Shown: in pieces, positions 9,874 to 64,000 of the stretch
How positions within the stretch are numbered: position 1 is the first letter of the stretch
How the letters are laid out: every line of letters begins with the position of its first letter
Assembly (NCBI GenBank): GCA_047495785.1
Contig: JBLDXI010000026.1
Span: forward strand, 310,001-374,000
Length of the DNA: 64,000 bases
Direction: 5' to 3'
Origin: Lepidodermella squamata
Lineage: Eukaryota; Animalia; Gastrotricha
Made by a program: the position numbers and the translations under genes
The notes under the pieces: generated by a model
Told to the model about the DNA's origin: nothing
What the model saw: the letters and a program-made list of their open reading frames with translations, nothing else
Database searches by the model: none

Positions 9874-12361
9874 ATGCTAGTTGCCCTGAGCAAAACGAAC
9901 CGCCCGCAGACAGCTTCAGCTGACTCGATGATGAACGAGTTCGATGTAGCAGCGTATCAGCAGAAAATGGTCGAAGCTACCCAATCGATCTGCCGGTTGT
10001 CGTATCGCAACTACAAGGGTGAATTGTGCCGAGCGATGGGCTTCCTCCTCGCCATCAAGTTGCCAATCAAAGGCAACGTATTTGGCCTCATGACAAATGG
10101 AACATTCCTGCCCCGCCACATCCTAGAATCGAGCCGATTCTTCTGCTTTGACATGGAATTCGATGAGTCTCTGACAAATATGAAGCAGCATACTATCACT
10201 GTTGCTCTTCATCGAGATATCGAAAGCTTTTACACCTCGGATCTGAAGCATCTTGATGTTACTTTTGTCGAACTACGGCCTCAAGTGCAGTTGGCTTTCG
10301 CTGCTAACAACTGCGTGTTCCTCAAGTCATCCGAAGAAGCTTTCCCTCCAACGGACCAAGACATTCTCATTGTCGATGAAACATTGAATTTAGCGAAATC
10401 ACGAATCTCGAGCAGTGGACGAATGCCTTCTGAACGACAGCTGACAAAGTTCGGTATGATCGGGTCGCCGGTTTTAAATGACTTCTCTTTCAGTGTAATT
10501 GCTGTTGCGAAAACTGGTGATAAGTTCTTCAAGAATGTGGCGACTGATCTTCGGTCAATTGTTCAGGATATTATTAAGGAGGGATTGAAGTTAGTCCCTT
10601 TACCTCCTCCGCCTCGGAAGTCTGTCATCGACAAAGAAATAACAACCATAGATGCGGTTAGTTCTATTCCTTATAAAACCTTTCATCTTCTAAATTTAAA
10701 TATATTTTCTCGCAGACTAAGGGAAGATTGGCCCATATCAGGGATTCGGTTGTTATTCCTTTCGCGATGCGAGCATCTATTTGTGCTCGTTTGAGAAGTA
10801 TGACTGAATTCCATTCGTTTTAATGGTCTTGAAATAACATTTTTCCAGATTTTCTAATACTCTCGGCTGATGATCTGCTCTCTTGCTCTGATGATCAAGT
10901 TAAGAGAGTCTTCCCGGAAGATAGCCTTCAAAAGGCTGTCACTAAATGGCAAAAAGCCATAAACAGGAATCCGGTAAGATTTTCCTATGTTATATCGTAT
11001 ATACAGCCGAATGGTTACCCTTGATATAGGATGAGCAACTTAGAAAAGAAACAAAGCCACAGCGTAAAATAGTGATTAACGGCTACGCTGCCAAACGAAT
11101 CATTAATTGCTTCAGAAATCCATTCAAGGTGAGAAATATACTTTGCGTTGAATGACTGCGTCACGTTTGGCCCGTCCTATAGCCTCGTTCTGCTGTTCGA
11201 ACTTGCTTGAGCGATCCTCAATTCTTCTCGTCGCTAGGGAAATCGCCTAAAACAAAACTCTTCGAAGCTCCTTGCTACATCCGAGCAATACTAAATATCC
11301 CAGAGCAGCCACCTCAAGACTCAAAAAGCAAACCGGGTACACCTGTCATCCTGATTCTGACTGCTGAAGGTCACGTAATCGCTCTAACAGCACTTGACTG
11401 GTCTTTCCGCTGGAAAACTCGCATTTCCCTACCGGAGCGGGAAAAATTAGACGCGGAAGATCAAGAAGAAAAAGAAAAAGAAGCTCCTCAGCCTATCGAT
11501 ATCGTTTATGCTGTTTACGACAACATCTTAGACAGCTTGTACATAGCATGTGGCGACAGTAATATTTACCGGGTGAAGCTGGCTATCTTGAAAGAAGCAG
11601 CTAGATCGCATCATAAATCAAAAGGCCAGAAGACGAGACCTATTGTTCCCTTGAAAACGCTTCTTGACTCAACAGCAACTGGTGGGAGGTGCTTCTGGGG
11701 ACTTTCGATCGACGTTAGATCAAGACTTCTCTTCGCTTGTGACAATGGAGGGGCTGTTAACGACATTTCAGTCTGGAAGCTACCTACCCCGGTTGAGACA
11801 TCGCCGAAACGAGCAAGTTTAGTAACTCCGATGGAGCTTATCGCTTCGTTGAAGGCCGATTTCTACCCTGCATTCTGCTCGTTTTTCACCCCGACTCGAG
11901 AACAAGCTGAAGGCATCATTGGAAAAGAGAATCTAGTAAATGCAACCAATTTTCTAGTTTTAGCAATTAGCGACTGGCGGATGAGTAGAATCGAGCTATT
12001 CGCCGGTCCCTTGATTGAAGATGAGGAAGATCTGGCCAACACTGAACTACGTCACATCAGCACTGTGGCTAAGAAAGACACGGCTAACCCAACGCGACCT
12101 GGCTACATCTCAAAACCCTGTGAAATCTCGTTCGATGAAAACGGCAACTTGATAGCCGCTGATCAAATGAATAACCGAGTTCTAATCTTTGGACTCAGCA
12201 GTGATGGAGGTGACGGCAGGCCATTGAAATGTGTTTGGTCCTCGAAATCTATTAACTGCGTGGTCGAGAGATTTGCGTTGGCTGTTACGCCTAATACCGG
12301 TCGCCCGGCTCTTTTGACCCATGCTGATTATAACACTCTAGTATCTTTCGAATCGTCGTAA
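9874..12361 (+). CDS. Trypsin-like (Trypsin_2-type) pseudoprotease + linker + C-terminal NHL-like beta-propeller
   Basis: N-terminal motifs SICRL, AMGFLL, LMTNGTFL, LDVTFVEL and TKFGMIGSPVLN parallel GTGF, TNxHV, LDY and GSSGSPV, with His and Ser lost. Short middle exons lie at ~10717-11128. The last exon has DPQFF and ISKPCEISFDENGNLIAADQMNNRVLIF (NHL-type). Confidence 0.65.
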
Positions 12362-13025
12362 TAGAACTCAGAGCTTCCTTTAAATTGATTATCACATTGA
12401 GTAGTAAAATGATATACGTTTCGCCATAATATCGGGAATGTTTTTGTTACCCCTGGTGCGCTAGAGAGTTAATGTTTACCTTTCAGAAGCGCCGTATCTT
12501 TTACGGGCAACTTGCACGGAAAAATAACTCAACACCTATGCTCGATAAACGATAACATCACGAAGCCATGAGGCGAAGAAAGCCGATTACTTGGATAAAA
12601 TGAAGCACCCTGTTATGAATTTCACATTAGTGAATCCTTTAGAATGCATCACTGGCTAATTTTACTGATACTTAACGGAAAATCAAGAATGCATGACGAG
12701 AAATCCGGCCTGATTGTTTGCATTCATCGTAGGTCTCTGAAGGCCTAAATAGCAACTTAGCGTTCGCTCTACTTTTGATCGCTCTCACTCAGATTATCGA
12801 ACGAAAACAATGAGTCCATTGATTTTTCACGATCGCTAACGGCCGCCTCGCCTGCGTTGGTCCCAACGGAGCGCGCCTTAGAGATGACCTCCATTAATAA
12901 TCGATTTAGGCCTCCTCAACAATGCGAATCTTAAATTACGCCATTCCTTGCCGTTTCTTGATTTCCCCTAAGTTGAATTTATTTTCATAATTTTTCAGAG
13001 ATTAATTCGCGTTAATTCATCCATT

Positions 13026-16000
13026 ATGGCTAACTGGGCTATGGTGTCGGGAATATCGCGGCGCCGCTCGCATAAAGCAAAGCAACAGCCGCACGCCCAC
13101 CCGGCCCAACTTAACGCTGATCAATCGGCTGCTCCCGCCCCATTCGACCAGCCAGCGCCGAGTGTGCGCGACGAATTAGCCAGAGTTTTTAAAGGTATCT
13201 ATTTTTTCATCCCAAATATCCTATTTATTTCAATATTTTTGATGACCCCATGTTTTCAGTAGTGCGCGCAGGAAGCTTCACCATTCGAGAAAAATGCCAA
13301 GCATGTAAATTGACAAACAAACTAACGTAAAAGCCCTATTCCCTTACATTTTTAACCCCGATTATTATATACGATAGTTCTCATTTTAGACATGCACCAA
13401 AAATAGAACCAGCCCTTAATAAATCATCGGATAATCGATGATATACGGTCTATAAAAAGCTCTTTCGTAGAACTGACCATAAGCATCCCCCGTAATTGCC
13501 CTGTTATCTTTGCTGTTCAGAAAAAGGGTACTGTTATACTCTCTTTAGGGGGTATATCGCGTTGTTTTTTTCCACCTTGCGCGCGGTATAGAACGATCAT
13601 TGCCTTCCGTTATAATGCCAAGCATAATAATATACCATCTGCATCGTTGAGTCACGCACTTTATTATTAGATCACGGAATATTTTTACCGCAAAATGTGT
13701 AAGTGATTTATTGATAAAATTAATTAACACGCAAAATGTTCGCGGCTGCGAGTCGACCGCGGCAAAGCCGTGCGCCGCAATCGTCACACTCGTCTGGCCT
13801 GGTCGCTTCATTCTTTTTTGGTGGAAACTCATCCGGTTCGCAACACCCAAGCGCAGCACTTCTCACATCTCCAGCCGCTAAAACATTAGCTAAAACTGCT
13901 CAAACCTCCGGCCAACACTCGTCTGCTCCAAGAAGGCGAAAACGCAGCCGTCGAAATGCAATCATCATGACCAGTGAAGATGAAGAAGTGGCGGAGGACA
14001 GTTTGGACGATGCTGAGCGGGCTGGAGAGAAGGCTCGACATCGACGCACCTCACAGCAGAAGGACGGTACATCACGAGAAAATCATCCCGGGATCATTCA
14101 AATTATCACCTTAATTATTTGAAAATCAGGTTTCGGTTTCCAACTTATAGATTTCATTCAGTCCCACTTGCTGGGTAATTGCAGCGCGAGGGCATTCTTC
14201 ACCTCTCAATTAGAAAGAATTTGATTGATTAGAAACGAGCTGTATCATCTAAATAGTAGCGCTATTCGCTTAATCTTCCCATTTCTTTCTTTTTTAATGT
14301 ATTGAGCACTAAAGCATGTTCCATGCCGCTTCTACTCCGTATAGGCCTGTGAAAAGACGGGGTGCTATCCGTCCTTCTAGATCTACCCCCGCTATTATGG
14401 CAAATTTCCAAGAAGGTTTTCGCTTCACTAACAACCTTTTGCACTATCTACAAATGTCTCCAAATAATTCCTGCATTTTCTTTCATTTTCAGTCTCTCGG
14501 CGAACCTCAAACACTGCTCAGCCGCTTTCCGCTGCTCAGCAATCGATTGCGAAGAGAAAATCTATAGTACCGCACCTTGTCAGGTCTTCATCAGGTCCTC
14601 AAGATGCTGGTTCGACAGCGGAGTTGGTGGACCTGCCTCGGAGTTGTGCCCTTCTCGCGCCGAGGAGAGTCACTAATTTATCGAAATATTCCCAGGCCTC
14701 TTTTTCACCGGCACCTCCCCCGCCACCGGTTTGGCCTATTCGAGCACCGGCCCGTGACACGTCACCGTCATCAAGCGACGTCGACGATAAAATACTACCG
14801 AAGACCCATCCTGTCACTGCGATTCTAGAGGAAGACGATGTAGACGACGAGCTAACCGAGTCTGATGAAAGTAATACCCTTCAAATAATCACCCGTGTTA
14901 ACTAACAAAAATTACTTACAAAATATACTAACAGCTCGAGCTAGATCCGAAAGGGTTGTTAAAGAAATCATGGATATGGCCAAGCCCCCTTTGCCGCAAC
15001 AGAGGTCTTTGGATGAAACAGTGACCTCGCAACGCAAAAGCAAGCGATGGTTCGGTAAAAAAGATAAGGATGCGGAGAAAAATATGACGAAGAGCCTATC
15101 TGCCCCGAACAAGCTTGCCATGATCGCAACGGCGTCGCTTATGATGATAAACGCTAGCATTGTCGGGATTAGTCGGAAACCAAAGCCACCTGTAAAGAAG
15201 ACCCATCCTGAAACAGACTCCGAGGGTACTTTGAATGCATTATTCCCACGCTTTTCCATGCATGCTTAGATGTATTTGTCAAAATTTGCGTTTTCAATTT
15301 CCTGAGATTCAGAATTGAAAGATATTTTTATTTCAGATGAAAAGCACGATTGCGGCAAGGAAGGGTGCGAAATCGTCCGGATCAATATTAGCGGAATGCC
15401 TTATGACATTCGATTAGCTGCCCTCAACAGTAGGCCTGATACTCTACTTGGAAATCCAATCAAAAGAATCGAATACTGGGACCCTGTTCGCCAGGAATTT
15501 TTCTTCGACCGATACAGACCAACATTTGAAGCAATTTTCGAGTACTATCAATACGGCGGGAAGTTGAAACGGCCGAAGCATGTCCCTGAAGATGTTTTCC
15601 TTGACGAGGTCAAATTTTTCGAAATCGAAAAATCATCAGTCGATGAATATCTGCGCGAAGAGGGTTACGTCGAGGAGAAATACGAATTACCCGAGGGTGA
15701 GCTGGCTAAGAAGATCTGGATTATGTTCGAGTACCCTGAAACTAGTCGGCTAGCCTTCGTAGTTGGTCTAATATCGATCGTCTTTACAGTTGTTTCAATC
15801 GTTTCATTCTGCCTAGAGACACTACCTCAATTCGCGGCGATCCACGTTTGTGTAGACCATAAACCTAATTTCGTCGAGCCTTTCTTCGTTATCGAAACGA
15901 TATGCACTGCCTGGTTTACGTTTGAATACTTGATGAGACTCAGTGTTTCGCCCAACAAATGGACCTTCCTGCGTAATTTCAAGAATATCGTCGATTGCGC

Positions 16001-16490
16001 AGCTGTTGTTCCTTATTACATCTCTCTTTTTACAACTTTGTACAAGATGGACTGTGAAACGTCGAAAGGAAGTGCCTCACTTGGGTTTCTAAGGGTCGTT
16101 CGCTTGGTTCGAGTCTTCAAATTGACAAAGCATTCAGCTGGTCTTCAAGTTCTCATGTTAACTTTCAAAGCATCTTTCGGCGGTCTTGGCTTATTTTTAG
16201 TCGCCCTGTTCGTCTGTATGCTGCTATTTTCTTCAACAATTTACTACGCCGAAGTTGGCCAACCAAATGCTACGATCGATTCTATTCCGGACGCGTTTTG
16301 GTGGAGTATAATTACGATGTGTACTGTCGGCTATGGTGATGAGTATCCAGTCTCAGTTTGGGGAAAAGTTGTTGGGTCGATCTGCGCAATTGCCGGCGTT
16401 CTGACACTAGCTATACCCGTTCCGATCATCACGGAGAACTTCAATAAATTCTATGCTCATAAATCGAAAGCTAAACCACCTACGAGTTGA
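13026..16490 (+). CDS. Shaker-type (Kv1-related) voltage-gated K+ channel with long low-complexity N-terminus
   Basis: T1 domain (INISG..PDTLLGNP..EFFFDRYRPTFEAI..YYQYGGKLKRP), S1-S6, TVGYGD filter and PVP motif in the exon from ~15338 to 16490. Upstream exons 14492-14870 and 14935-~15226 splice in phase. The 5'-most exons and the start (13026 or 13736) are uncertain. Confidence 0.9.
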
Positions 16491-16640
16491 AACAAATTGG
16501 TTGCTACTATAGACTGAAAAATCTTCATCGTTGTAGAAATTAATTGTCTTTATTTTCAGAGCAGCTTTCACGGCGTAATTTAATAAAATAATGCTGATAC
16601 ATGAACTATTTTTGAAAATGAAGTTGTTTATATGGGTTGG

Positions 16641-17046
16641 CTACTTGGCTTGTCCAGTCATGATTTTTCGAGCTACAACTTGAGCCCAAAGATAGAAGCT
16701 GACCTTGTTCTCACACATTTCGATTGACTTCAACACAGATAAGCACCGCATAAGCCGTTTTCGATAGTCGTGTTGCCCGACCCATTTCAGAAGTTCAAGC
16801 AGATCATTGGAACTGCTTTTTGCTATGTAGGTCTCGACCCTGTTTATTAGCAGGCGTTGAAGCATGTCTGGAAGATGGAAATACGACTATTAAGGGTTGG
16901 AGAATGTTATAAATCAAAATGTTACCTGATTTGGATAGTTTCGAAGCGGTAAGCTTAAGGAGATCATTCTTTCGAACAGCCTTGGAAGAATCACATGAAT
17001 GTAATCCGTAGATAATAACAATTAGAACCGCAATAAAAATTGCCAT
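16641..17046 (-). CDS. Small secreted basic protein, paralog of 21435-21845
   Basis: Signal peptide, phase-1 intron 16925-16868 after ...KS, C-terminus YRKRLMRCLSVLKSIEMCENKVSFYLWAQVVARKIM. Confidence 0.75.
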
Positions 17047-17759
17047 TTTCGTCGCTACTGAGCTTTGCCAGGTTTATATAAATGGTGATAGCTTTCAATG
17101 TCTCACTCCTTAATGAACGGCGACCTTTTTTCTTGGGTGATATACGTGTCGTGGACAACTGGAATCGCATTACCTAATTAATTTACGGCGAATTGACGCT
17201 CGTGATAGAATAAAAAATGCGCAGATTGATGATGACGCGTCGCATTTATTTAGCCATTGAATCATTGAAGTGTGTACAATATGTACAAACCGCTGTGGTC
17301 ATTCAAAATCAATGAACAATCATTTTCAGAGTGACTAATTTAATATGAAAAAACCAACAAACGTCAAGGTAATTTAAACATATCGCATAATAAGCAGGAC
17401 GAAACAACAGTCATATTCTAAATAATTGAGGCTAAAAAATTAAAAAATCGGGCAGACATGTCGGCCAATCAAAGCCAAAACTATTTTGAATATTTAGGAT
17501 GGATTTTAGTTCTTGTTATTTCTACAGCAGAATACAGAGCTTGAACTGAAATTGGCTGAACTCAAAGATTTTCGAGGGGTTCCTTGCGGCTGAAACTAAT
17601 TGAAATGGTTAAATATGGTTGAATTTGAATCTTTCTTTAATTTGATGATTATGATAGATGAAAAGGGTAATTATACCATCTGAATTACACGTTCTAGAGA
17701 GTCGTGTTTCACCCAGAATGTTCCATCGGGCTTCCTTTCCAGATTTCGGGCTACACTGT

Positions 17760-18797
17760 TTAATATATAGACCTATTGAGCATGAAGACAATTCTTGAAA
17801 ACTCAGGCACCAAGTAAAATCCGTCACTGCTTGCTTGCAAACTTGATGAAAGAAGACCATGATGTGCAGCGAAATATCCCACTCCAGCAGCTTGCCACTC
17901 GACCCGAGTGATATGGCCGCGAAAGTCTGCTACGTCAGATCCTTCCTCAACATTGAACACCCTAGTTATCCAACCACTTATAATACCATCACTTCCACAT
18001 CCTCCACTACCAAAACTGAACATTTCGGCCCAGAACTTGGCATTCATCTCCTTTGCCAGGACATCAGTCAGCATTTGACTTGCAAGAGCAGCAACTTCGC
18101 CTAGGTAATCCACCATTCTTTGGGATGAAGCGAGTAGCAACTGCCATTTCAAGGTAGCCTCGATTATTGAAATCCAGTCCTGCGCTTCTCCCTCCAGTCT
18201 CACCCTTGGTATCCCGCATTTCATAGTGCTGTATTGATAGTAAGGCGAAACAGCCTCCGCAAACGCTGCGTATCTTGCCTCCTCGGAAATGCCAGTATCA
18301 GTCGAGAATCTGGGCAGTAAACCAACGATATTCGACGGCATCTTCGTCCTCAAAAGTGTGATCACAGAGCTAAGATTTATAGCTCTTTCAGGATCTTGGA
18401 AAACAATGACCGTTTGCAATCGGCTTGAATTTGTGAACAAATCCCGATTCTGCTCTACATTACGCTGAACGTGCTGGGAAATCACGTTCAACACTGTAAA
18501 GTAGAACATGTCAGGTCGCATAACAGCTCCAATATGGTCAGCCCAACATTTGACAAGATACATAGCCAGATTTTGATGGTAGTAATCGGCGACGTTTGGC
18601 AGGGTTGTTGTGACATGGGGTTGATAGGTCGTCCCATCACTTTCACCTGTGTTGAGAGATGACACTGCCCTTAGCAATTCTCGCCTCATGAAGTCTCGAT
18701 CTTCGCCGAACGGATTCAGAGTTAAGTTGCCTTTCAAGTTCAAACTCAAAGATTGAACACAAGGAAGAAGAAATAATATTAACATAGTCATTTTCAT
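17760..18797 (-). CDS. DUF4419-domain protein, intronless, with signal peptide
   Basis: Motifs H..AVMRPDMFYFTVL..ISQHV..N.E..RDLF, PRFST, YYQY...CGIPRVRLEGEAQDW and ISGWI, which are typical of DUF4419. Confidence 0.8.
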   Translation of the reverse strand: MKMTMLILFLLPCVQSLSLNLKGNLTLNPFGEDRDFMRRELLRAVSSLNTGESDGTTYQPHVTTTLPNVADYYHQNLAMYLVKCWADHIGAVMRPDMFYFTVLNVISQHVQRNVEQNRDLFTNSSRLQTVIVFQDPERAINLSSVITLLRTKMPSNIVGLLPRFSTDTGISEEARYAAFAEAVSPYYQYSTMKCGIPRVRLEGEAQDWISIIEATLKWQLLLASSQRMVDYLGEVAALASQMLTDVLAKEMNAKFWAEMFSFGSGGCGSDGIISGWITRVFNVEEGSDVADFRGHITRVEWQAAGVGYFAAHHGLLSSSLQASSDGFYLVPEFSRIVFMLNRSIY

Positions 18798-18894
18798 TAT
18801 TTTAATCTGTACGAAACGAAGATATAGTTTAACATTTTATACGTGAAATTATCACAATTAGTCAAGTTAGTTAATGATTAATGATAGAGCTAAA

Positions 18895-20193
18895 CTAAAC
18901 ATTACTCAAAAGCAATTGTGTTGCGAGATATTTTGAGTATTCTTGTCCCCTGCAGAATGTAGACAGCTCGTTGAATTTCTCTCGAAATACAGCCACGTTA
19001 AACTTGGGAAACATAGTCTTCACTAAGTTCGACATTTTAAACGGGTGAAATGCAATGGTTTTGTTGAAATTAATCATCTCATTCACAGGCATATCAAGTG
19101 GCAGTCCATTCACAAAATTGTTAGAACCATCAATGATTCCAACTGTTGATAAATTAAGGCATAGGAATGTGTTAGGAACTGCGATCTCTTGAAACACTAA
19201 ATGCTTAGCGAACACTTTGAACATTGCTGTTACTAGAGGAAAGTCTTGCTTTGAAATGTAGAAGAGTTCGGTTTGGCCGCCGCCAAGAAGCCTCCCTTTA
19301 GCTCCAGTGTATCTGACTAGATCAGCCAAGCAATCAGCCAGAATTTTCGATTCCTTATCAGATACTGACTTGCTTTCCTCCAAATCCTTAAGAGCAGCTA
19401 GAGATTGTTCTTTGTAGAATTGTGGCCACAGCCATTCGACTTCTTCACTCGAGCATGAAGTTTCGTTCCAGTCACATCTCTTCATAGTCCGAATGTCATA
19501 AACCATCCGCCTCTTCAGGGGTAAGGAATAACTCCTATCCAGATCGAACTCAGGCTTGAAGATGAAGTCCCAGTAACTGAATAGAACATCGTCGTGGGCG
19601 AAGAAAACTCCAGAGACTGATTTCAACTCTGTCCTCTCCAAAACTTGGCTTACACATGAGTAAATCGTCTCTCCGACATCTCTGTAGTAAAAGCTGTAAC
19701 TCACAAATCGATCGGTGAAGAATTTGATGAAATCTTCAGAGGCATCCATGTAAAACCGCCTGAGTTGGACGTGCATGGTTGTCGACTTTCTCGCAGGTCC
19801 ACAAAAGTAGATTTCAGCGAAGACGCGACCATAAATTGCGTTGACCAGCGGCGACACTAGGTACTGTCTTTGCTTATTGAAACCAACGACAAGAATGGTT
19901 GAATTTTTCAATTGCTTCAGTCGATTCAATGCATCGCTGGTTAGTTCACTGTCGTAGGGAAGTTTCAAATGGTCTGAGATCCCTAGAGGATTTCTCGGCC
20001 CTCGACTTTGGTCGAACCAGCATAGCTTTTTCGAGGTTATATAGTCTGATTCTGACCAGAAGTCGTCGAATTTGTTAACTACGGCTGTGCCGAAATTCGG
20101 TAAATTGAAACTTAGGCGGTAATTAACAATGAAGGATAGCAAGAACAAGAAGCTAGCTGTTGGCAATAGCCAGAGTGTTGTATGAGTCTGCAT
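18895..20193 (-). CDS. STELLO/DUF288-like putative glycosyltransferase, type II membrane protein, intronless
   Basis: N-terminal signal anchor; ILVVGFN..Y...F..IYFCGP, GVFFAHDDVLFSYW, ELFYI, VFQEIAVPN and FHPFK resemble the STELLO C-terminal region. Confidence 0.7.
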   Translation of the reverse strand: MQTHTTLWLLPTASFLFLLSFIVNYRLSFNLPNFGTAVVNKFDDFWSESDYITSKKLCWFDQSRGPRNPLGISDHLKLPYDSELTSDALNRLKQLKNSTILVVGFNKQRQYLVSPLVNAIYGRVFAEIYFCGPARKSTTMHVQLRRFYMDASEDFIKFFTDRFVSYSFYYRDVGETIYSCVSQVLERTELKSVSGVFFAHDDVLFSYWDFIFKPEFDLDRSYSLPLKRRMVYDIRTMKRCDWNETSCSSEEVEWLWPQFYKEQSLAALKDLEESKSVSDKESKILADCLADLVRYTGAKGRLLGGGQTELFYISKQDFPLVTAMFKVFAKHLVFQEIAVPNTFLCLNLSTVGIIDGSNNFVNGLPLDMPVNEMINFNKTIAFHPFKMSNLVKTMFPKFNVAVFREKFNELSTFCRGQEYSKYLATQLLLSNV

Positions 20194-20433
20194 TCATTGT
20201 TGTAAAAAGCAAACGCAACAATGGCTCTCTATTGATAGCAGTGTGAGTCATATAGCTACCACTGCACCCGAGTAAGGAGAATGCACGCACCAAAGCGGCT
20301 TAATTTTACACAAAATAAAACTGTTCCTGCAGCCTTTTGGCTGTTGACATCCTGGAGATGAAGTGGGAAAGGCGCCTAGAAGCCTTTCTAAAATAAATAA
20401 AAGTCTGGCCTCGCACTAGGGATTGGAATCAGC

Positions 20434-20626
20434 GGCAGACCATCGCAACAGCAAATAGCCAAAACAGCAAACGCGACAAAACAGCAACTTTTTCAATTTG
20501 CGACATAACAGCAGAAACACGATGCATCTTTTGCATACTAAGTTTTCGCTGTTTTGTCGCAAAAATAAAATTTGCTGTTTTCGCCGTATTCGCTGTTCTG
20601 CGCAGTTGCTGTTTTGTCGCCGTAAC
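20434..20626 (-). mobile_element. ~190-bp MITE family A, copy 1
   Basis: Ends GGCAGACC...GCCGTAAC with internal GCGACAAAACAGC subrepeats. Flanks GAATCAGC and AAATCCGC match 6/8, consistent with a decayed 8-bp TSD. Confidence 0.7.
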
Positions 20627-20837
20627 AAATCCGCACGATTGAAATTCAAGACATTTTTTTCCAAAGATTTTTCGAAGGAGACACCTCATAATAATGTAAT
20701 GTATCATTTCAACCGCATTTTCAACAACTGCAACCACTATCTTACCCGATGAAGCTCATCATAGTGAAAATGTTAGTCTATCCCCAAGATCATCGCTCGG
20801 GTCACATGACTAATTACCGCGTGTCAATAATTGATAA

Positions 20838-25800: not shown

Positions 25801-25902
25801 TTTCGACAGAAATTCATATGTAAAAAAATCTCAAGAGAAATTTCGAAATCGAAAAACGCGGAAATAATAATGGCAATTCTAGGATTCAACTTTCATAAAA
25901 TG

Positions 25903-52466: not shown

Positions 52467-53119
52467 TTTTTCGCAGGAACTGATGTTTGAAACTTGAGGT
52501 TTGAATTTCGCGCGGTCCAATAAGGATATTTCTTGTGCACAAATTCTCAGAATTTTCAATCGTCACCGTATCATCCTATAGCTCTCGGACGTTTTGATTA
52601 TTCTGCGTAATTTCTACAACTATTTTCAGCTCTTTTCGGCGGATTTTACCTGTCACCTGCCAACCGGCCTTCAACGATATCACAATTTCGACAATTGAAT
52701 TCCTCAATTTTCTCCGAACTAAATGTCTATGAATAAAAATGTGACAATAATTGGGATGGCTCATCCCACTCCTCCTCTGTTCGGTAACGTCTGAGTTTTG
52801 TCTTGAAATAAAAATCAGCATTCGTGATGTGTAGTAAAAGTCTCTTTTGTGCGTACCGTATAGGTGCAGAAACATGACACACGCATATTAAAGTTTTGTC
52901 TTGGTTGACCTAGACGGTTATTATTGACACACATCGATTATAACACGTGCTGTCTACGCTGTATAAATCGATGGGTATATGAATGACTGAAAATGCATGA
53001 CTGACACGCGACGAGCTCACATTGAAAATACAAGTGCGTCCTATTTATTGACCCGTTCTCGTTTTTAAGGCTTCAAGCATTATAAAACGCATCAAACGAT
53101 TATACCACAGCTTCTCCCG

Positions 53120-56100
53120 ATGGAACAGAAAATAACGGAGAATCGGATCATCTTGTGCAAGGTTTTTTAACTCGAAATTATCTGAATTCACCTTCAACTG
53201 AATCGTCACAGGTTTGTAGCAAGGTTGTGCCAAAGCGAAAATTATTCAACCCTCGCGTATGCCATGCCTGTCAGGTACGTATCATCGACCATAGAGAATA
53301 GAATGATTAGAGTAGAAACTCACAGCTGAATCATTATGGCAACAATTATTTCGCGCAAAAAAAATTAAGGCGTGCTTTTCAACTTTTTTTACTCATTTTT
53401 CAATCAGATTTTAGTGTATGAAATGCCAAAAATCAGCTAAAAATGAGAGAAGTTTGCGTTGTGATTTCTGATAACGGAAATTTCACTTCGAGCTGATATT
53501 TTGACGCCTTAAAAATTAATACCCAAGAATTTCAGTGATATCAAATATGAGGTGGGTATATACGAAGTTTTCTTTCATATATAAGTATTCATATGTATGA
53601 CAAATCACCTTACATGCATATTTTCTTTCATAAAATCCTGCCTTTTCGCCAAACGATGATTAGTCGTTTAGTGTCGGGGTTCGGGTAAGGGTTAGGGTTA
53701 GGCAGTGCTTTGAATTTTATTTAGACCCTATTTTCTCTGATTTAGATTAGAAATGATTGATTTATGGGGGAAAGCATTTTGATTTGATTGATTATGATTT
53801 AGCCTTGGGGTTGCAATTAAATAAGTTATACCGGGAAGCTAAGATCTTTCCTCTTTTTTGATGGAAATTCGCTTTAGAAAGTGACAGTGGTTTCACGTTC
53901 TCGGTATTTTATCCATTTCCTGACATTTCGAAGCACCAAGCTTCATGAAAATCGAGATGCTTCGCCATTTATGGCGATTTATAGGTGTCAATGATTTGAT
54001 TTGATTGATTTAGTCCTGGAAAATTGGGACAATTATTGATTTTGATTGATTGAAGGATGTTCGTGATTTAAGCTGTAAATAAAATAAAATCAAATCCAAA
54101 GCTCTGGGGTTAGGTTTTGGTTGGGTTAGGGTTCAAGGTTAAGGTTAGGGTTAGGTTTAGTTCGAGGTTCGGTTTTCTATGAAGTTCGATTTTTAGGCCC
54201 CTAATAACCTTCCCACTTCCCCAATAACCATTTTCAAGCGAAAATAATTGACTACGCTTTCGCAACCTCGTTTTTCTTTTATATGAACCGAAGACTAGTC
54301 GTCTTACATTTCCCGAATGTTTTCATCTCGAATTTAATGAATAAAAATATGTATGAAAGATTGCTCCCAAAAAATAGTGAAAATTTGGAAGAAAAATCAG
54401 TTCAATAATTTAATTTTACGTGCATTTTTGCATGTGATTTTTAAACAGAAAATTAAGGCGAGATTTTTACGACTGCCATTCTCGTTTCTTAAAAATAATT
54501 TCCGCTTCAAAACTGGAGCTCGAGTTTCTAATCTTATAATTCTATTATCTTTGGTACCACAACAAAATAAATTTTTTACGAAATTCATAATTCATACTTC
54601 AGAAATTCTACATTCGCAAAATTGAGCACCGCTTTGAAATGGTATGCTCGACTGGCAACATGAACTGCGATATCAGCTCAAACCCTAAGAAGACTTGCAG
54701 CCGCTGCCGTCTTGAACGATGCATCGCCGCTCGGAAGAACGGTGAACATTATATTATATCGATTAATTGCACCGGACTTACGGATTTTTTTCCTACTAAA
54801 AGGTGGCACTTTGAAGCCTGAAAATTCGAAGAAGGGCGCTATCATTCAGAACCCTGATCCCTTCGATCTAACAGAATTGGAAACTGTGACTCGAAACTCA
54901 ATAACAGGCTTAACTGTTCTGCATGGCATGGAAACTGTGAGTATTCAATATTCGATTTTAATAATTCCGAAACTGAAATTTAAACCGTGAATAGTTGCCA
55001 CTTCGCCGCCGCACCGAGCCGTATTCGGACTTGAACCAGCTAGCTACGGATTTTACGGTGGATCTTGTGTCCCAGGTTTACAACATGGGGCTGAAATATG
55101 GAGCTTTTATGAAAAGTTAGCTCAACATTTTTATATATTTTTTGTCTATTACTCACTGTCTCTTCATGTGGATTTAGGCTGTTTCAAGCTGTCGGAGTCT
55201 GAAGTTGGCTTAGCATTAACCTATGGCTGGAGCAAAGTGATTTCGGCTTTTTCAGCCTTGCCAAGCTGCCAGTGCTCCATGTTCGTTAGCAGCGCAGTCG
55301 TCCCGCAAATACGGGCTTTGTATCCTGAATATTCGGTAAGAAATTCGCGTAAAATTCGCGCTTAAAATATACCAGAAATTCTGCATTGGTTCTTTCAATT
55401 TTTCATTTAATTTGATTTCACTTGAAAATTTGGAAAATTTTAATTTTAATGAATTAACCTCAACTAAATTAAATTATTTTATATTTCTTATTTTTACGAA
55501 TATCTTTCAGTGGAACTAAATTTTTGTTGCGAAAACTAAATCGAGTGCAAAATTGATGGGGGAAAATGACAAGCCTATATACAGCGTGCCCCATAAGCCA
55601 TAAGTAACGCAAGGATAGGAAATTCGCGGAAAAGGTTCAGAAACTCAAGAATGAGAGACAAAGCCACATCTCAAGGCCGGAATAATTTCAAAAAAATTGA
55701 AAACATCCGCAGAATATTAATACTGTATGTCACATTTTAATTTTTAATGGGATCGAAAAAATTCCGGAGAAATTTGGTCCAACCGGGTAAAATGCCAATA
55801 TAGCGAACCATTTACTATCGGGATATCCGGTAAATTTTTATTCCTACGGTTAAATCACGGATAAAAGATGAACTTTTCTCTCGTTAGGTTCGATTTAAAA
55901 AATAATTTTATTTAATTTCCTTAACAAAAATCAGCAAATTAAAAATAGTTGCGCTGGGACAAGCTGTTAATGAAAGGAGCAATTTTCGAATCCGTAATTT
56001 CTTTTACCCGAAACAAATTAACGGTGAGCGGACCTAATTTGCCGTAGCGGAACCAAAATTGCTGTTAGCGGCACCAAATTTTGGAATTTTGTACTAGCCT

Positions 56101-56851
56101 GATATCCCTTTTCGGATATTTCGGATGGCCAAGATTAACCACAATAATTATACAAAATCACCAGTAAATTCAGCGTAAAATCCTCTAATAAGATAAGGTG
56201 TTCGGTTCAGAACCCATTCATCGCCTAAAATTCATAGAATTATTGAAAAAATGACCGCGGGAAAATTTCGATTTTAGTTCCGCCATGTGCAAAATATGTA
56301 AAATTCCATTAATTTGCATTAAAATTCGTAGGTAATTAATGCGGTAATATTTTGCTTCATAAGTCGATGTTATTACATATGTGAGGGCTTCTAAAGACAA
56401 TATAAATTTATGAGACCCTTTTTATTTTCAGCCCTGGATGGAGGCAGAGAAGGAGCTTGCCTACGTCGTTAATTGGTGGAAGCCTTCTCTTGCTCAGTTC
56501 TCGCTTCTGCTCACCTATCTGTTCCTCAGTGGTTCGTTAATTTGTGTGAAACTTAGCCCAACTTTCATTAACTTCATCATCCCAGCTGAAGCGGCCAGCT
56601 CAAGTCCTCGTGTTGCCGAAGCTCGGGAAACGGTAAAAGCCGCTCTGATGCTATTGACAAGTGGCATGGACGATCCTGATGAGATGAAATCGACTCCTGT
56701 TAACCAAGTGATGTTCGCATTGCAAAACGTGTTAATTTGCGCCCGAGCTGGCCTGGAAGCTACTTCGGCGCGTCAGCAGGTCATTTACAAAGACCGGCAA
56801 CTCGAAATGCTCCTCGAACGACTGCCCGATGAAGTAGCCAAACCAAAGTGA
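53120..56851 (+). CDS. Divergent nuclear receptor, tandem copy 2 (two enlarged introns)
   Basis: MEQKITENRIILCK|VCSKVVPKRKLFNPRVCHACQ|...; same exon structure as copies 1 and 3, with introns ~53276-54603 and ~55336-56431 expanded. Confidence 0.82.
53703..54106. mobile_element. hAT-like MITE (CAG termini, 8-bp TSD) inserted in a TTAGGG-like tract
   Basis: Ends CAGTGCTTTG and CAAAGCTCTG; exact GGGTTAGG direct repeats at 53695-53702 and 54107-54114. Confidence 0.8.
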
Positions 56852-57868
56852 CTGGCTGATTTTTTCTTCGACCAAAGCCATAAACTGTTGTGAAACAATG
56901 ACATGAAATAAAACTTATCTTTGCTGATCCAGCATGTATCCATTTACTGATAGATATTTAAAAATTATTCTAAAAATGCCCCTCCTTATTAAATAAAGGC
57001 TCAATTTTCGAGGGAGACATAAACAATAATATATATTTTTATTGTTTTAAACAAAAAAACCCGCTACAATCAATTGAGAGCAGTCGCCGCTAACGACGCT
57101 GAAATTTTTAGATTAATCTATGGTTAATTGAATTAGTTTAGATTGGCTGTAAAGCTATTTGGTAGGCTTGTGTATATAGGAAGGAATTCAAAATCCGGTT
57201 ACTACGGCTGGCTTTTTTCACTTTTGTCAGGCGATTTATCGCAATATTTCGAATGTCGCTCGTTACCGGAATGATCTCGAAAATCCGACTCTACTACCGC
57301 ATGCTAGGCTTTGTACCCGTGAATGTGAAGCGCGAATCGCGAATACTACACACTGCCCTGTCCACCTTCTACGTCCAAGAGACCGCAGTTCCCGCACGTC
57401 ATGTGGACCTGGCTCAAGCTCAAGGTTCGACTCAACCTGAAACTCAACAGCAACCCGCTGAACTTCATGCTTAGGGTACACGAAAATATTCCGGCCGTCG
57501 ACCCAGCTGTAAACAACGCCTTAAACTACGCACCGCCTCCTCCTCCGTCTCCTCCCACGCTGGAGGAACATGGATGTTTTCGCTCCTCCTCCGTTTTCGC
57601 TGAGCTACAACCCGCCCAGGCGCACTTCGTAGCCGGACTTCATCATCTAGCTCTTCAGTTTGACGATGCTGCCATCGACGCGCCGCCAGCAAATCAGCCG
57701 ATGTGGGAAGGTGATGTGAATGGTCAGGCGATGGGTGGAGGAAGTTCGAGCAGCTCCGAGAGATATCTATGCCGCGAGTTGGTGCCGCCGAAGAACCAGA
57801 TTAGGCGGATGAAGAACTACTTGCTATTTTCAACATTTACATTGATTTATCTAATTATTGTTGTATAG

Positions 57869-58490
57869 TTGAAGGCGGCTTATGACTCGGTCTGGCACGC
57901 TGGCCTTGTGCACCGCCTCTGCGGACTTCCTCTCCCGCGGAACCTAATCGGATGGCTCACAGACTATCTGCGCGACCGCAAACGTTCGCCTGGCTGACCG
58001 CGTTCGCATCACCGATCTCGAGCGGCGCTGTCGCCTGCCCAGCCTTTCGGATTTTTTCTCCCAAGTTCAAGTCCGCAACGCCGAGAACTCCCGCAGACAT
58101 GTGCTGCCACTTCGCGAGCAAATCGAAGGCGCCCGCTTGCGTCCGCCAACCGCGATGAAGTCGCCAGTAGTCGTCCTCCATGACTGCCTGTCGTCAGGCC
58201 CGCCTGTCATAGTCCACCCTTTACCCTTTATTCCTTGTTCTTTGTTTCTTTCCGCTCATCATTTCTGTTCATGCTCTTCTCTTCATCCTCTGTGATTTAT
58301 GTTGTACTCTGTCTTCTGAACTGTTCTACCTATCTACCTGCACCCGATAAAGCTTAAGCTGCTGATAATTAATTCCTTAATGTCTCCCCACTAGTGTCTT
58401 CCGCGAACTGTTTGAGATCTCAGACAATCGCGTGTCCTCTTTGTGCCGGCGCCTTGTCTGACATGTCTTTTTATTGTTGTTATTTTCTGC
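57869..58490 (+). mobile_element. Truncated, internally deleted non-LTR retrotransposon (LINE) remnant
   Basis: LKAAYDSVWHAGLVHRLCGLPLPRNLIGWLTDYLRDR resembles the LINE RT motif KAFDxVWHxGL...WIxxFLxxR, followed by a pyrimidine-rich 3'UTR-like region. Confidence 0.7.
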
Positions 58491-58655
58491 CTCTAAATTT
58501 AATTTGTAAGTCAAATGAGGAAAAATAAAAAAGATTTTCGTTCGTTTCGTTCGTTAATCGTTAATGTTGTAATTTCCGCCCTTGCTACTTATGTTAATTA
58601 TGCTATTAATCGCTAGATTTATTGTTGATTATTCGGAAAAATGACATTAGGACAT

Positions 58656-58865
58656 GTCATTAGCGTCGTGTTGAAAAACTCGGATTAAGGCTTGTCTACG
58701 TCAGTTTCAAGGTGACAAGTGAAATGCCATTCGTGTTTGCTCCATTTTCGATTCAGAAATAAACATTCAAGTAAGAAAACACCGCTATTTACTTGTCACC
58801 CGTCACCTGGAAACTGACGTAAACAAGCCTAAATCCGAGTTTTTTAACGACGATAACGATATGAC
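58656..58865. repeat. Palindromic (MITE-like) element
   Basis: AAAAACTCGGATTAAGGCTTGTCTACGTCAGTTTCAAGGTGAC pairs with GTCACCTGGAAACTGACGTAAACAAGCCTAAATCCGAGTTTTT. Confidence 0.7.
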
Positions 58866-60029
58866 GCTGCCATTTAAACAAATAAAATTCGGACAGATGG
58901 GTTTTTGTTGGTCGTTTTTTGGGACCTAAATTCACCGTTTATGAAATTCGGACACATGCATAAAATCCCTCAAAATGTTGAATATCAGAGAATTGTTGGA
59001 ACTTTAATTTTCATCATCATAATCAAGTTTTGTCCCGCGCTTCAACTTAAAACTTTGAATTTAATTAAACAGGTGTCTAATTACTTTGCGCATGCATTAG
59101 TTTTAGCAAAACTATAAACCATCAAATTAAAAAAGTTGAGCGAAGCATTGAGAAGTTTGAAGAAATCGTTGACCATGATATGCGGTTAGGGGCACTGAAA
59201 ATTCAGTGTCCATGTCAATTTGAAGGTCACGTGTGACATGTCATAACTAAATGATAAATTACTTAATCCCGTATTGAATTTCATGATAATACTACTCGAT
59301 ATTTAGTTATAGTCTCTGGTTACTACTAAGCCCAGCTTTCATTAATATACGATATATGCCAGTTCATATTACAATGAAAATTCCCTAATCGATTTAGAGG
59401 TGAAAAATCGTGCTACAGTGAAACGCGAATAAGGGCGGAAATACGGCAAGTGTGAGGTTTGCACTTTTACGCAAATGAACGGACATTATCAACGGCTTTT
59501 TTATTTATCATCTCCGTACTGACTCGAGCAAACTTCAACGATGTTAATTTTGATAATGGGTGCCTCAGAAGGGATTAAAGCTCCGATTTTTCTTGGAACT
59601 ACAAGTCGTTGCATAAACATTTGAAATAACTGAGCTGGCTGTTCGTCTAGTACATGTCATAATTTTGCCATTGAAAAGCAGCTTTCGAGTCTGTAATGGT
59701 TTCATTCTTGCAGACTATAAGCGCAGACGTCTGACGTTGGCCTAATATTTCTGCTAAATTTGTCTTGGCTAAGTTTTTGTACCTAGGCCTTAAACCATCG
59801 ATTATAACGCGTGCTGTCTGCATTGTAAAAATCGATGAGCCTATGAATGAAATATATTACAGACACGCGCACGACATGCTCACATGAAAAACAAGTTGTG
59901 TGCGTCCTATATCCCGACCCATTTAAATACCAGTTCTCATTCTTTATTGTCAAAACATAATATATAACCAGTAGGGTCGCAAGATAAATTCGTTTAACTA
60001 ATACAACTTCATCTCGCCGATTAAAACAG

Positions 60030-61477
60030 ATGGAGCAGACAACTTCGGAGAATCGCGTCATTCTGTGCAAGGTTTTTCTACTTGTTTTCCGAACTTCTTT
60101 CTCTTTCAACCGAATCATCACAGGTTTGTAGCAAGGTTGTGCCTAAGCGAAAATTCTTCAGCCCTCGCGTATGCCATGCCTGTCAGGTATGTTTTAATCA
60201 ACTGCTCCGAAGGATCAATTGAATGATGTATTTTGCAGAAATTCTACATCCGTAAGATTGACCACCGCTTTGAAATGGTGTGCTCGACAGGCAAATTGAA
60301 CTGCGATATCAGCTCAAACCCTAAGAAGACTTGCAACCGCTGCCGTCTTGAACGATGCATTGCCGCTCGGAAGAACGGTGAAATTAACCCTTAACAATTA
60401 TATCCACGCGAATTATCGATTTTTCCCCTATCTCAAAGGTGCGAGGAAGGACACTCTAAAACCTGAAAATGCGAAGGATTTTAGCGAGGGCACTATCATA
60501 CAGAACCCGGAGCTCTTTGACCTCGGAGAGATGGAAACTGCGACTCGAAACTCAATAACAGGCTTAACGGTTCTACATGGCATGGAAACTGTGAGTATTC
60601 AGTTGAAATAATTCAATTGAAATACATTTCGTTTCCGTGAAAAGTTGCCACTACGCCGCTGCACTGAGCCATATTCGGACTTGAACCAACTAGCTTCGGA
60701 ATTTACGATGGATCACGTGTCCCAGGTTTACAACATGGGGCTGAAATATGGAGCTTTCATAAAGAGTGAGCTCAACTTTTTTCTACGTAGGTAATATGTT
60801 AATGTCTGCATCTTGATTCAGACTGTTATAAGCTGTCAGATGCTGAAGTTAATTCAGCATTAGCTTCTGGTTGGAGCAAAACGATTTCGGTTTTTTCAGC
60901 ATTGCCAAGCTGTCAGTGCTCCTTGTTTGTAAGCAACGTCGTCGCTCCCCAGATACAAGCTTTATTTCCTGAATATACGGTAAGAAATAACTCGAATAAA
61001 TGATTCCGAAAAATTCGTATAATATGGTTCTGTTAATTTGTATCATTTGATTCAACAATTCTAGCCAATGATGGAGGCGGAGAAGGAACTTGGATACGTC
61101 ATCAACTGGTGGAAGCCTTCTCTTGCTCAGTTCTCGCTTCTGTTGACCTATCTGTTCCTCAGTGGTTTGTATTTGCTATGAAGCTAGCCATATTTTACCT
61201 GCGTTTTTCAGCTGAAGCTGCCAGCTCAAGTCCTCGAGTTGCTAAAGCTCGGGAAACAGTAAAAACAGCCCTAACGGTATTGACAAGTGGCATGGACGAC
61301 CCTGATGAGATCAAATCGACTCCTGTCAACCAATTGATGCTAGCTCTAGAAAACGTCTTAGTCTGCGCTCGAGCCGGCGTTGAAGCTACGGCAGCCCGTC
61401 AGCAGCTTACATTCAAACACAGACAACTCGAAATGCTCCTCGAACGACTGCCCGATGAAGTGGCCAAGCCGAAGTGA
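60030..61477 (+). CDS. Divergent nuclear receptor, tandem copy 3
   Basis: MEQTTSENRVILCK|VCSKVVPKRKFFSPRVCHACQ|KFYIRK...CNRCRLERC; LBD exons colinear with copies 1 and 2. Confidence 0.82.
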
Positions 61478-61807
61478 TTGGCTGACTCTGTTAACATTTG
61501 CTCTTTCTCTTCGAACCAACTTTTGCGAATCAATGAAATAATAAAATAAATTTCCTATTTGCTGATCCAGCTTATTATATTCATTTACTGAAATTGATTT
61601 ACAAATTATCAGAAGAATGCGTCTCCACATTAAATGAGTCGTGCCACACAGAAAAGGTCCTCACCGTTTTTGTTGAGCCCCACTATGAGGGTGACTATCA
61701 CAGTCTCGGGATCACAACTCTCTTCTGTAATTCTTATTCAGCTCTAATAAGGGCCTTTTCTATACGGCACGTCTCAAATAAAGGCTTCATGTTTTCGAGT
61801 TTTCTGA

Positions 61808-64000
61808 TCAAGGACTGATAATGCTAACCAGGCTGTTCAGTAATCCTGTATCGGTCTCGAGAATAGCTATTGACTTGCTCAGTTTAGAACCTAGAGTTAC
61901 CACACTTGGCAAAGTCTTGTGTGTTGTTTGCCCAGGGGACGGCAAAGCAACGGCAATGCGATGGCAGCTTTTGCCAACACGATCAGAAGACCATGAAAGC
62001 TCTCCAATGTGCTCTTCTCCATCATTTGTATCCTTTTCCTGCTCGCCATACGCATAAACCTGTAAGAATTTGGATGATTCACGCCCCCGAGTCGAATAAT
62101 ATATTACTTACGATAATCTTTCCGAGTGAGCTATCACCAATGATTATATTTCCTAGCCGGTCGAATATTATTTGAGCTGGATAAGCTTTCACCATTTGAA
62201 GTTCACTAACACGTCGCAGCGTGAGTCCAGAGGTTGATCGCCGATTTACCTCAAATTTAACAATCACAGAAGTGTCTCTATTAGGCAGAAGTCTTGTCGA
62301 AGCTACTTCTTCATTAGCCTCTAAAATCTCAACGAATCGTTTTCCGTCATCGGGCATCAGAACTTCAATCCTTCTCTTCTTCCTATCGCAAACTGCTATG
62401 TGATAGCTTTCATCCTCCGCGGTGAATATCGAACAGCTGTAGGGCGAGAATCCACACAATATTGAAGCTATATGGTGGCCGATAGGTTTCCCGCATTCAT
62501 CGGATGCTATAGACCATATGGAAATGTCATTGTGTTTACTTCCATGGTAATCACAACCGAAAAGTAATCGATTCAGAGGATCGACGGATATAGTCTCCAA
62601 ATGACGTCCATCTAACATTTCACTTGGAATGAGAACATCTGTCTCTGCGGAGCAAATTTCTTGAAGGTTAGCAGCCCCATTAGTTATCAAAGTCATAACC
62701 GAGTCCATTCCAGAGTGTTTAGCCATGTCCGCTAGCAGATAGCAAACTTTAAGCAAGTTTGATGAGTAGTTTATTCGAAGAACTGATCCATCCGTTTGAC
62801 CGCTGGGGTAATTGAAAAGATAGATGTCATCAGAAACATAGTCGTAGGTAGCATGGGCGATTTTCAGAGTTTTCATCGCCACATTTTTAGGCATGACCAG
62901 GCTACAACTTCCGCTGAACTTCGAAGTTGTCCACTTTTTATCGCGATTTGGAAAATGCTGCAAAAGTAAGTAAGCTATCAAAAAAGCGATGAATGGAAAT
63001 TGAGAGCAACCTCGACTCTTCCGTTGCTTGTTAGCACTAACAAAGCTGGCTCTGGGTGCTGGCTGATTGGACTCCCAATGTATACGATTGCAGTTATATC
63101 ATCTTTCTCTTTCGTCTGGAAAATTTCCACCGGATACCTAGAAAGATTCACCCAGTACTTGGGCGATAATGCGTTAGTTCGACGTCGAGAGTCTGATAGC
63201 GTAGAAGCGAAAAATTGAGGATCAGTCGGACTAATCATGATGCCTGAATCTGTCAGTAGCTCATCAGGAACATCCAAATTATCGAGCTCTTCGCAAATAT
63301 CAAACGATTCGGCGTGGCCGCATTGGAACTGGAATTCTTTGATAGCTGCTCGGATTTTAGGGTGCTTCAACAAGTCACGCGATTTCGGTCGATTGACGGG
63401 GTTCTTCTCCAGCAACTTTTCGCAGATAAAATTACGAAGGTCTGCGCTGTAACTCTCATCAGTTATCGGCTTCGGGGATTCGCTAAAAAGCTTCAAGTTA
63501 ATGCCTATTTTCTTTTACATGGCTCATACTGTATAATTTTCCGCATCAAGGCAGCCTCGTTAATTGCAAGAAACTGGAAACGGAATAAAATTATTTCCCA
63601 TGGAAATGAAGGTTTCAAAAATAATTTACTGGTAGATCCAAAGTGGCCAACTCGTAGCAAACGATTCCCAACGTCCAAATATCGCCACGAAAGGAAAAGT
63701 GGGCATCCTGTAATGTTTCCGGGGGCCTATGAGTGATAGTTCCCCAGCCAGTCCCGGCAGAACTTATGTCTCTGAAATTCTCACAACATAACCTCATCCG
63801 TCTAAAAATTGTACGAGAAATACGTGTCGAGCTGTTTGGAAACTCCAAAGTCACCAAGTTTCAAGAAAATTCCGTAGGCAAGAAAAATGTTGTCTGATTT
63901 GATGTCCCGATGGAGGACGCGCAGTTTTGTGTGGAGATAATCAACTGCCCTGACTAGTTGGGCAGTCCAGGCCCATATTTGGCACTCGTGGTATGATCCA
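61808..64000 (-). CDS. NEK-like Ser/Thr kinase fused to DPQFF/NHL-like beta-propeller (5' part outside window)
   Basis: Kinase motifs YLH...VLHRDIKSDNIFL, KLGDFGVSKQL, PPE, DIWTLG and LLEKNPVNRP. Then TDPQFF, SVDPLNRLLFGCD..NDISIW and PAQIIFDRLGNIIIGD. The last exon (from ~62060) ends SIISP*. Confidence 0.82.

Follow-up and report, generated by a model that had tools for sequence, protein, structure and literature searches.

A diverged six-bladed NHL-type propeller behind varied N-terminal modules in the gastrotrich Lepidodermella squamata

Two genes in a 64,000-nucleotide window of the gastrotrich Lepidodermella squamata (GenBank assembly GCA_047495785.1; G000:C26:310001–374000 in our numbering) end in the same kind of domain. 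Gene A occupies positions 9874–12361 on the forward strand, and gene B runs from 61808 to beyond 64000 on the reverse strand. We think it probable that both are members of a subfamily of six-bladed NHL propellers that is specific to this lineage, has expanded to at least about 35 loci and diverges fast, and in which the propeller serves as a portable C-terminal binding module and the front ends have been exchanged repeatedly. The genome searched is an assembly of 121.2 Mb in 151 contigs, with ∼43% GC and introns of ∼50–60 nt. Searches were run exon by exon, single exons rather than the joined full-length proteins of spliced genes being the queries.

The two C-terminal domains are homologous. 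A sequence-only reading had listed eight pairs of colinear motifs common to A and B, and all eight were found at their places in the translations. Six of them fall inside a single significant BLASTP alignment between the main propeller exons (11207–12358 on the forward strand against 62082–62981 on the reverse; E 5e-14, 23% identity, 288 columns). The DPQFF pair is colinear with this alignment but not significant by itself (BLASTP E 0.10), and the WSS..R[FI]A[LV]A pair gave no BLASTP alignment and a profile score of −2.9, though at the correct profile position. We also built a leave-out profile from 13 paralogues, with A and B excluded. It gave gene A 203 bits and gene B 101, each as a single colinear match. 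Canonical NHL genes elsewhere in this genome (the LIN-41-like L040, L042–L045 and L047) matched this profile with one NHL-like blade only, at 9–25 bits per repeat; L041, which has a coiled coil and three Pfam NHL repeats, was intermediate at 73 bits. By these scores, each of the two propellers stands closer to the family of the other than to NHL proteins in general. The N-termini are unrelated, as had been said of them, with a Trypsin_2-like domain in A and a protein kinase in B.

The fold was modelled for the propeller of gene A (exon 5). The AlphaFold2 model contains at least 24 strands arranged in six four-stranded blades, with a predicted local distance difference test score (pLDDT) of 87 and a predicted template modelling score of 0.87. 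Its best structural match is the NHL domain of Drosophila Thin (6xg7; Z 25.7, root-mean-square deviation 2.6 Å over 262 residues, model residues 2–381), and the next are Lin41 (Z 24), TRIM2/3/71 and Brat (Z 22). A family profile, made from the single-exon domain of gene A and 14 paralogous frames, matched the NHL domains of TRIM71 and Thin at E values of 1e-28 to 1e-22. Profile positions about 205–245, which correspond to blade 5, matched each TRIM71 repeat (E 7e-28) and also the NHL repeats of Thin, TRIM2/3, the Pizza designs and PknD. Pfam, PF01436 (NHL) included, gave no match in the C-terminal regions of A and B even at E ≤ 1. Exactly one Pfam NHL repeat rose above the cut-off in the family members L022, L025, L026, L033 and L046 and in a metagenomic relative, P0131; in gene A, one blade alone can still be recognised as an NHL repeat, at about 12116–12196 of the forward strand, within exon 5. 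Inspected by eye, blades 2 and 3 show the NHL pattern of a strand ending in Asp, a turn, and a hydrophobic strand ending in Asp or Cys-Asp. Three conserved aspartates of the exon-5 product, D105, D169 and D310, occupy the hallmark position of NHL repeats in blades 2, 3 and 5, respectively. The shared domain is an NHL propeller that has diverged strongly and has grown through insertions, in line with its earlier assignment to the NHL type.

Gene A consists of five exons on the forward strand, and its frame is open across all joints (755 codons). Exon 1 (9874–10656, 261 codons) carries the Trypsin_2-like pseudoprotease domain, identified from its open reading frame and its homology to the paralogue L038. 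Exons 2 (10716–10797), 3 (10849–10973) and 4 (11030–11128) make up a linker region of ∼100 codons. Exon 5 (11183–12361, 392 codons and the stop) holds the whole six-bladed NHL-type propeller, with DPQFF at 11213–11227. All four joints (10656|10716, 10797|10849, 10973|11030 and 11128|11183) are of the GT..AG type; they were found in RNA-like contigs of run X1 and are absent from the DNA run X2. They chain across X1 contigs, no one of which spans all four, and X1 coverage at the gene is limited to about 9900–12364. Both genomic variants of the gene are represented in the RNA-like contigs. Given the spliced joints and the five exons in frame, the N-terminal domain and the propeller are parts of one transcript, as the proposed fusion would have it. 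Gene A is cytosolic and expressed.

The nature of the front end of A was read from its paralogues, of which exon 1 has three in the genome. One of them, L038 on contig C15, matches Pfam Trypsin_2 (PF13365) at 1.1e-12 with the His, Asp and Ser of the triad intact. When a profile of A and the two other paralogues was aligned to L038 with hhalign, the probability was 96.9% (E 1.3e-10, 178 columns). In this alignment, the catalytic His of A is replaced by Thr (..MTNGTF..) and the Ser by Ile (..GMIGSP..), and the Asp is kept (..LDVTF..). By homology, these data support the earlier description of the N-terminus as a trypsin-like pseudoprotease.

The paralogues of this module have partners of their own. 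In L038 (L038:1324–2954; G000:C15:∼4643400–4645050), the intact-triad Trypsin_2 domain is followed by about six ankyrin repeats, and its product may work in the cytosol as an active trypsin-like protease that bears an ankyrin arm. L036 (L036:1465–2683; G000:C61:∼130100–131330) has a Trypsin_2-like domain that keeps His and Asp and has Pro in place of Ser, followed on the same strand by TIR_2 (Pfam E 1.3e-15); a dead-protease–TIR gene of this sort is unusual for an animal. The linker exons of A (10716–11128) resemble L037:728–1100, the region after the dead protease of the paralogue L037. The two have in common a pattern ..SVVI..IC..L.. and then ..L.SA..L..S.EE.K..F...W.., for which Pfam gave no match, and this region may be a small helical domain that accompanies the protease-like module from gene to gene.

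Gene B extends ∼0.4 kb past the end of the window, to a start codon near L020:2915 on contig C26. In the direction of transcription on the reverse strand, the window contains a kinase exon that runs on past the window end (63824–64000; HRD..N and DFG, Pfam Pkinase 1.9e-27), a second kinase exon from the activation segment to subdomain IX (63630–63771; Pfam Pkinase 1.3e-6) and a small exon for subdomains IX–X (63530–63573), placed there by consistent GT..AG sites and frame. The junction exon (63011–63482) encodes the C-terminal end of the kinase and, after a short linker, TDPQFF with the first propeller hairpin. It is followed by the main propeller exon (62112–62957), assigned to blades 2–5 by the BLASTP alignment to A and the 101-bit profile match, and by the last exon (61808–62059), whose translation gives blade 6 (WSS..RIAVA) and the C-terminal tail, with the stop codon at 61808–61810. 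The splice sites (63011|62957, 62112|62059, the acceptor at 63482 and those of the small kinase exons) were deduced from the genomic sequence. Within the junction exon, one open frame of 172 codons crosses from the kinase tail through TDPQFF to the first hairpin. Over the initial ∼50 residues of this frame, many solved kinases can be aligned with their last subdomains (STK10 residues 237–281, E 0.006). The kinase–propeller fusion therefore needs no splicing evidence.

Among solved structures, the kinase of B is nearest to NEK1 (1e-17) and NEK7 (2e-15), with Aurora, PAK and GCN2 close behind (about 1e-14 to 1e-15), so that the label NEK-like, which we retain, is one by best match. The kinase keeps the VAIK Lys (..IVKE..), the HRD Asp (..HRDIKSDN..) and the DFG Asp (..GDFG..), and judged by these residues it is apparently active. 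Neither a signal peptide nor a membrane segment is present in gene B. Those kinases that most resemble its own (42–52%) sit at loci without a propeller. For the NEK-like kinase exon, a first look at the genome gave 429 candidates, some of them in arrays on C36, C42, C61, C2 and C73.

The same propeller recurs across the genome. With the gene A domain alone as query, 19 places were found; the family profile gave 48 matches, in about 38 colinear loci (the C25/C26 and C29/C46 duplicates included). Front ends were read at 15 of these, namely A, B and the upstream same-strand regions of 13 paralogues, and they are varied. L021 (C29) has an S1 trypsin domain in which GDSGG has become GEPGD, two Sushi domains and a mucin-like Thr/Ser linker. 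L022 (C21) has a signal peptide, an ankyrin array of ∼680 residues and Sushi, and L032 (C9) likewise has a signal peptide, ankyrin repeats and Sushi; in L032, ankyrin and Sushi share one open frame, as do Sushi and the first hairpin. An ankyrin frame of 1259 residues precedes the propeller in L029 (C2). RING domains are found in L028 (C17) and L025 (C24), in the latter case in one open frame with the first hairpin, and only in these two among the examined members; in A and B, RING, B-box and coiled coil are all absent. L026 (C17) and L031 (C59) have kinases in which HRD reads HCA and HRG, respectively, and these pseudokinases have lost the catalytic Asp. Coiled coils are present in L023 and L030, and a Cys-rich region with a mucin-like linker in L033 (C1); the front ends of L024 and L027 received no assignment. 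By coordinates, a kinase match lies 0.7 kb upstream of a propeller on C55, and a Sushi match shares a 607-codon frame with a propeller on C2. The notion of a modular family, with one propeller behind swapped N-terminal modules, was thus borne out well beyond the two genes for which it had been put forward.

Proteins with a signal peptide, a long ankyrin array, Sushi and the propeller are encoded at L022:4306–8273, L032:4250–8407 and L039:2–2058, and secreted ankyrin repeats are odd. Sushi domains are abundant in this genome, where a first look gave 1,734 candidates, with dense arrays on C15 (∼5.0 Mb), C19 (∼2.47–2.52), C33 (∼1.16), C3 (∼3.05–3.1) and C24 (∼5.37–5.40 Mb).

In a tree of 18 propellers, the three kinase-linked, the two RING-linked and the three ankyrin-linked propellers did not group by architecture. 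The approximately unbiased (AU) test rejected monophyly of the kinase-linked propellers with a P value of 8e-5. Repeated exchange of front ends is likely, and the closeness of the B kinase to kinases from propeller-free loci also speaks for it.

A second copy of the whole region, on contig C25, allowed selection on these genes to be gauged (the copy of gene A is at G000:C25:2054160–2056641). For exon 1 of gene A, which encodes the dead protease, synonymous divergence (pS) between C25 and C26 is 0.24 and nonsynonymous divergence (pN) 0.0017, a pN/pS ratio of 0.007. The corresponding values for the propeller exon are 0.093, 0.0045 and 0.05, and pN/pS for gene B is 0.1–0.2. In the introns of gene A, ∼45% of ungapped positions differ. 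With a ratio of 0.007, the dead protease of A is being maintained, not decaying. The value of pS varies several-fold among neighbouring exons and genes (0.09–0.24 in gene A, 0.03–0.07 in gene B), which suggests old, mosaic allelic or duplicate divergence between the copies, perhaps with gene conversion.

How such a family may have arisen and how it may work can be sketched. The ancestor was most likely a RING-NHL protein of the Thin/TRIM32 or malin type. The propeller would have persisted at the C-terminus as a portable binding module while the N-terminal part was exchanged repeatedly, with the result, in gene A, of a catalytically dead Trypsin_2-like domain joined to the propeller via a linker of ∼100 residues and, in gene B, of an apparently active NEK-like kinase joined to it directly. 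We infer that the propeller docks a partner, which would be a protein or, for cytosolic members, possibly RNA, and so brings the front module to that partner. For the kinase of B and the RING members, its role would then be substrate targeting; dead protease and pseudokinase members would act in scaffolding or decoy binding. Such docking resembles what the NHL domain does in TRIM-NHL ligases and the RCC1 propeller in NEK8/NEK9.

There are several caveats to this picture, each of which counts against it. Exon 1 of A had no direct match in Pfam or, with phmmer, in the PDB, and AlphaFold2 runs on the N-terminal domain (three sequences) ended at a pLDDT of 36, with no usable fold; the pseudoprotease label thus rests on homology, not on structure. 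The front-end census covers only part of the family, and gene models other than A are without RNA evidence. Branches in the tree are very long (median 1.8 changes per column) and resolution is low, and the group submitted to the AU test was chosen after the tree had been seen, so exchange is likely rather than proven. Finally, the role of the propeller as a binding module is suggested by analogy with NHL, WD40 and RCC1 propellers.

Other explanations can be set against the same data. That the similarity arose by chance, or that separate neighbouring genes were wrongly merged, could be argued from the DPQFF and WSS pairs, neither of which is significant alone, and from the reliance of all models but that of A on genomic sequence. 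This is contradicted by the BLASTP E value of 5e-14 between A and B, by the leave-out profile, which scores both genes colinearly, by the spliced joints that link all five exons of A and by the single open frames with which B, L025 and L032 bridge their domain junctions; we consider an artefact of either kind extremely improbable. Another possibility is that the propeller is an enzyme of the SGL, lactonase or arylesterase type and not a binding module. Lactonase-type six-bladed propellers are almost level with the NHL domains as structural matches (Drp35, Z 24.1; DFPase, Z 22), and the neighbours by shape in the ESM Atlas are SGL/NHL proteins. However, there is no Pfam SGL or arylesterase match, the family profile reaches 1e-28 for TRIM NHL domains and 5e-4 or worse for lactonases, and D105, D169 and D310 sit in the NHL hallmark position, not in a metal-site pattern. 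An enzyme of this kind is accordingly a very unlikely candidate. Cytosolic members might alternatively bind RNA and regulate genes post-transcriptionally, as the NHL domains of Brat and LIN-41/TRIM71 do. The top sequence-profile matches among solved structures are indeed the TRIM71/LIN-41 NHL domains, and the structural Z scores are 24 to Lin41 and 22 to Brat. Yet NHL sequence features are kept in one blade only, the idea is unworkable for secreted members, and the best structural match, Thin/TRIM32, has a protein-binding NHL domain. We view this role in RNA binding as improbable.

The alternative of most interest was raised by the sequence-only reading, which saw in the swapped effectors the logic of NLR-like immune and cell-death receptors. 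Its modular part stood; NLR function found no direct support, no NTPase, death-fold or TIR having been found in the 15 architectures examined, and several members being secreted. In an innate-immune or cell-death system of this type, a diversified propeller would sense non-self or damage and trigger the N-terminal effector. The lineage-specific expansion and very fast divergence of the family would fit, as would the many catalytically dead front ends, which are common in signalling scaffolds. One paralogue of the protease-like module of A is fused to TIR_2 (C61) and another to ankyrin repeats (C15), and the pseudokinase–propeller gene L031 (C59) lies ∼3 kb from a TIR match. Against this, no NACHT/NB-ARC NTPase, death-fold or TIR was found in any examined propeller gene: Pfam gave no NACHT/NB-ARC match for exons 1 and 5 of A, for B or for the frames read upstream of the 13 paralogous propellers, and the linker exons of A (∼100 codons) are too short for an NTPase. 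Several members carry signal peptides, Sushi domains and mucin-like linkers, unlike an intracellular receptor, and purifying selection between the copies of A is strong, with no sign of diversifying selection. A TIR–propeller fusion was sought by the coordinates of the 66 TIR matches in the genome and was not found; none of these matches is inside a propeller gene, the nearest being ∼3 kb upstream of the L031 kinase. An NLR-like immune system is thus unlikely, and what keeps the idea alive at low probability is the fusion of paralogues of the A module to TIR_2 (L036) and ankyrin repeats (L038). We would allow a similarly small chance to a recognition system that is specific to gastrotrichs and not NLR-like, with secreted and cytosolic propellers as variable receptors and dead proteases, pseudokinases, RINGs and the NEK-like kinase as outputs, the Trypsin_2-like TIR and ankyrin fusions being part of it.

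The preferred reading, a portable NHL-type binding module, can be placed among known propeller proteins. TRIM-NHL proteins (Thin/TRIM32, LIN-41/TRIM71, TRIM2/3 and Brat) and malin/NHLRC1 have the same six-bladed C-terminal NHL fold, and the RING-NHL layout of malin is matched by L025 and L028. TRIM32 and malin have been described as related RING-NHL proteins (PMC8067510). In contrast to TRIM-NHL proteins, the family has five of its six blades unseen by Pfam NHL, and its domain is ∼100 residues longer, with helical and acidic insertions. Moreover, the RING, B-box and coiled coil are missing from A and B, and dead protease, kinase, ankyrin and Sushi modules stand at the front of the family.

Gene B also calls to mind NEK8 and NEK9, in which an N-terminal NEK-type kinase is combined with a C-terminal beta-propeller. 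This RCC1 propeller is regarded as serving in targeting or regulation. The propeller of B is six-bladed and NHL-type, not seven-bladed RCC1, and B is NEK-like by best match. PMC3441220 deals with the RCC1 domain of Nek8. PknD of Mycobacterium tuberculosis likewise unites a kinase with a six-bladed NHL propeller (1rwi), which the family profile matches at E 3.5e-9. This bacterial protein, however, is a receptor kinase that crosses the membrane and carries its propeller outside the cell, whereas B is without signal peptide or membrane segment and has a kinase of the eukaryotic NEK type. With NLR/STAND proteins the family shares a constant repeat domain, varied N-terminal modules and expansion; the examined members differ from them in having no central NTPase switch, death-fold or TIR effector, and in that some are secreted.

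One relative outside this genome came to light. A profile search of a large library (5.8 billion proteins) returned 70,052 matches, dominated by multi-NHL proteins that were hit via a single NHL-like blade, and among the top 150, which were viewed, P0131 is the only true family member. This protein, from a metagenome contig in the European Nucleotide Archive (L039), shares 50% identity with L022 and has ankyrin repeats followed by Sushi and the propeller, which indicates that the ankyrin–Sushi–propeller architecture is conserved in another organism. Word-index protein searches with the A propeller, the 15-sequence alignment and P0131 returned only P0131 itself and one generic NHL protein, and a scan of metagenome loci with one alignment found no relative. 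In the ESM Atlas, searched by features and by shape, the neighbours were only generic NHL/SGL and WD40 proteins, the nearest feature cluster being NHLRC1.

No NEK-NHL or protease-NHL fusion turned up in literature searches, and the L. squamata genome paper (PMC11660948) makes no mention of NHL. The suggestion of an undescribed family looks right for the subfamily; it does not hold for the fold, nor for a C-terminal NHL propeller behind RING or kinase, both of which are already known. What we could not find described is an NHL subfamily so diverged, so large in one genome, and paired with a NEK-like kinase, dead proteases and secreted ankyrin–Sushi proteins.

In this little-studied animal phylum, one recognisable fold, the NHL propeller, has been made into a general-purpose C-terminal module, and several of its front ends have not been reported for an NHL propeller: the NEK-like kinase, the dead Trypsin_2 and S1 proteases, and ankyrin plus Sushi behind a signal peptide. 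Five of six blades are invisible to Pfam, and the family is almost absent from the 5.8-billion-protein collection; for these reasons, annotation pipelines leave such proteins half-blank. A profile from the family alignment would repair the annotation and, given more gastrotrich genomes, allow domain exchange or a role in recognition to be tested.

One neighbour of gene A deserves mention. The gene upstream of it (window 9000–9405) has much deeper coverage in the RNA-like run, contains a 48-nt GT..AG intron (9121–9168), and ends in a poly(A) loose end at 9405, ∼470 nt before the start codon of A.

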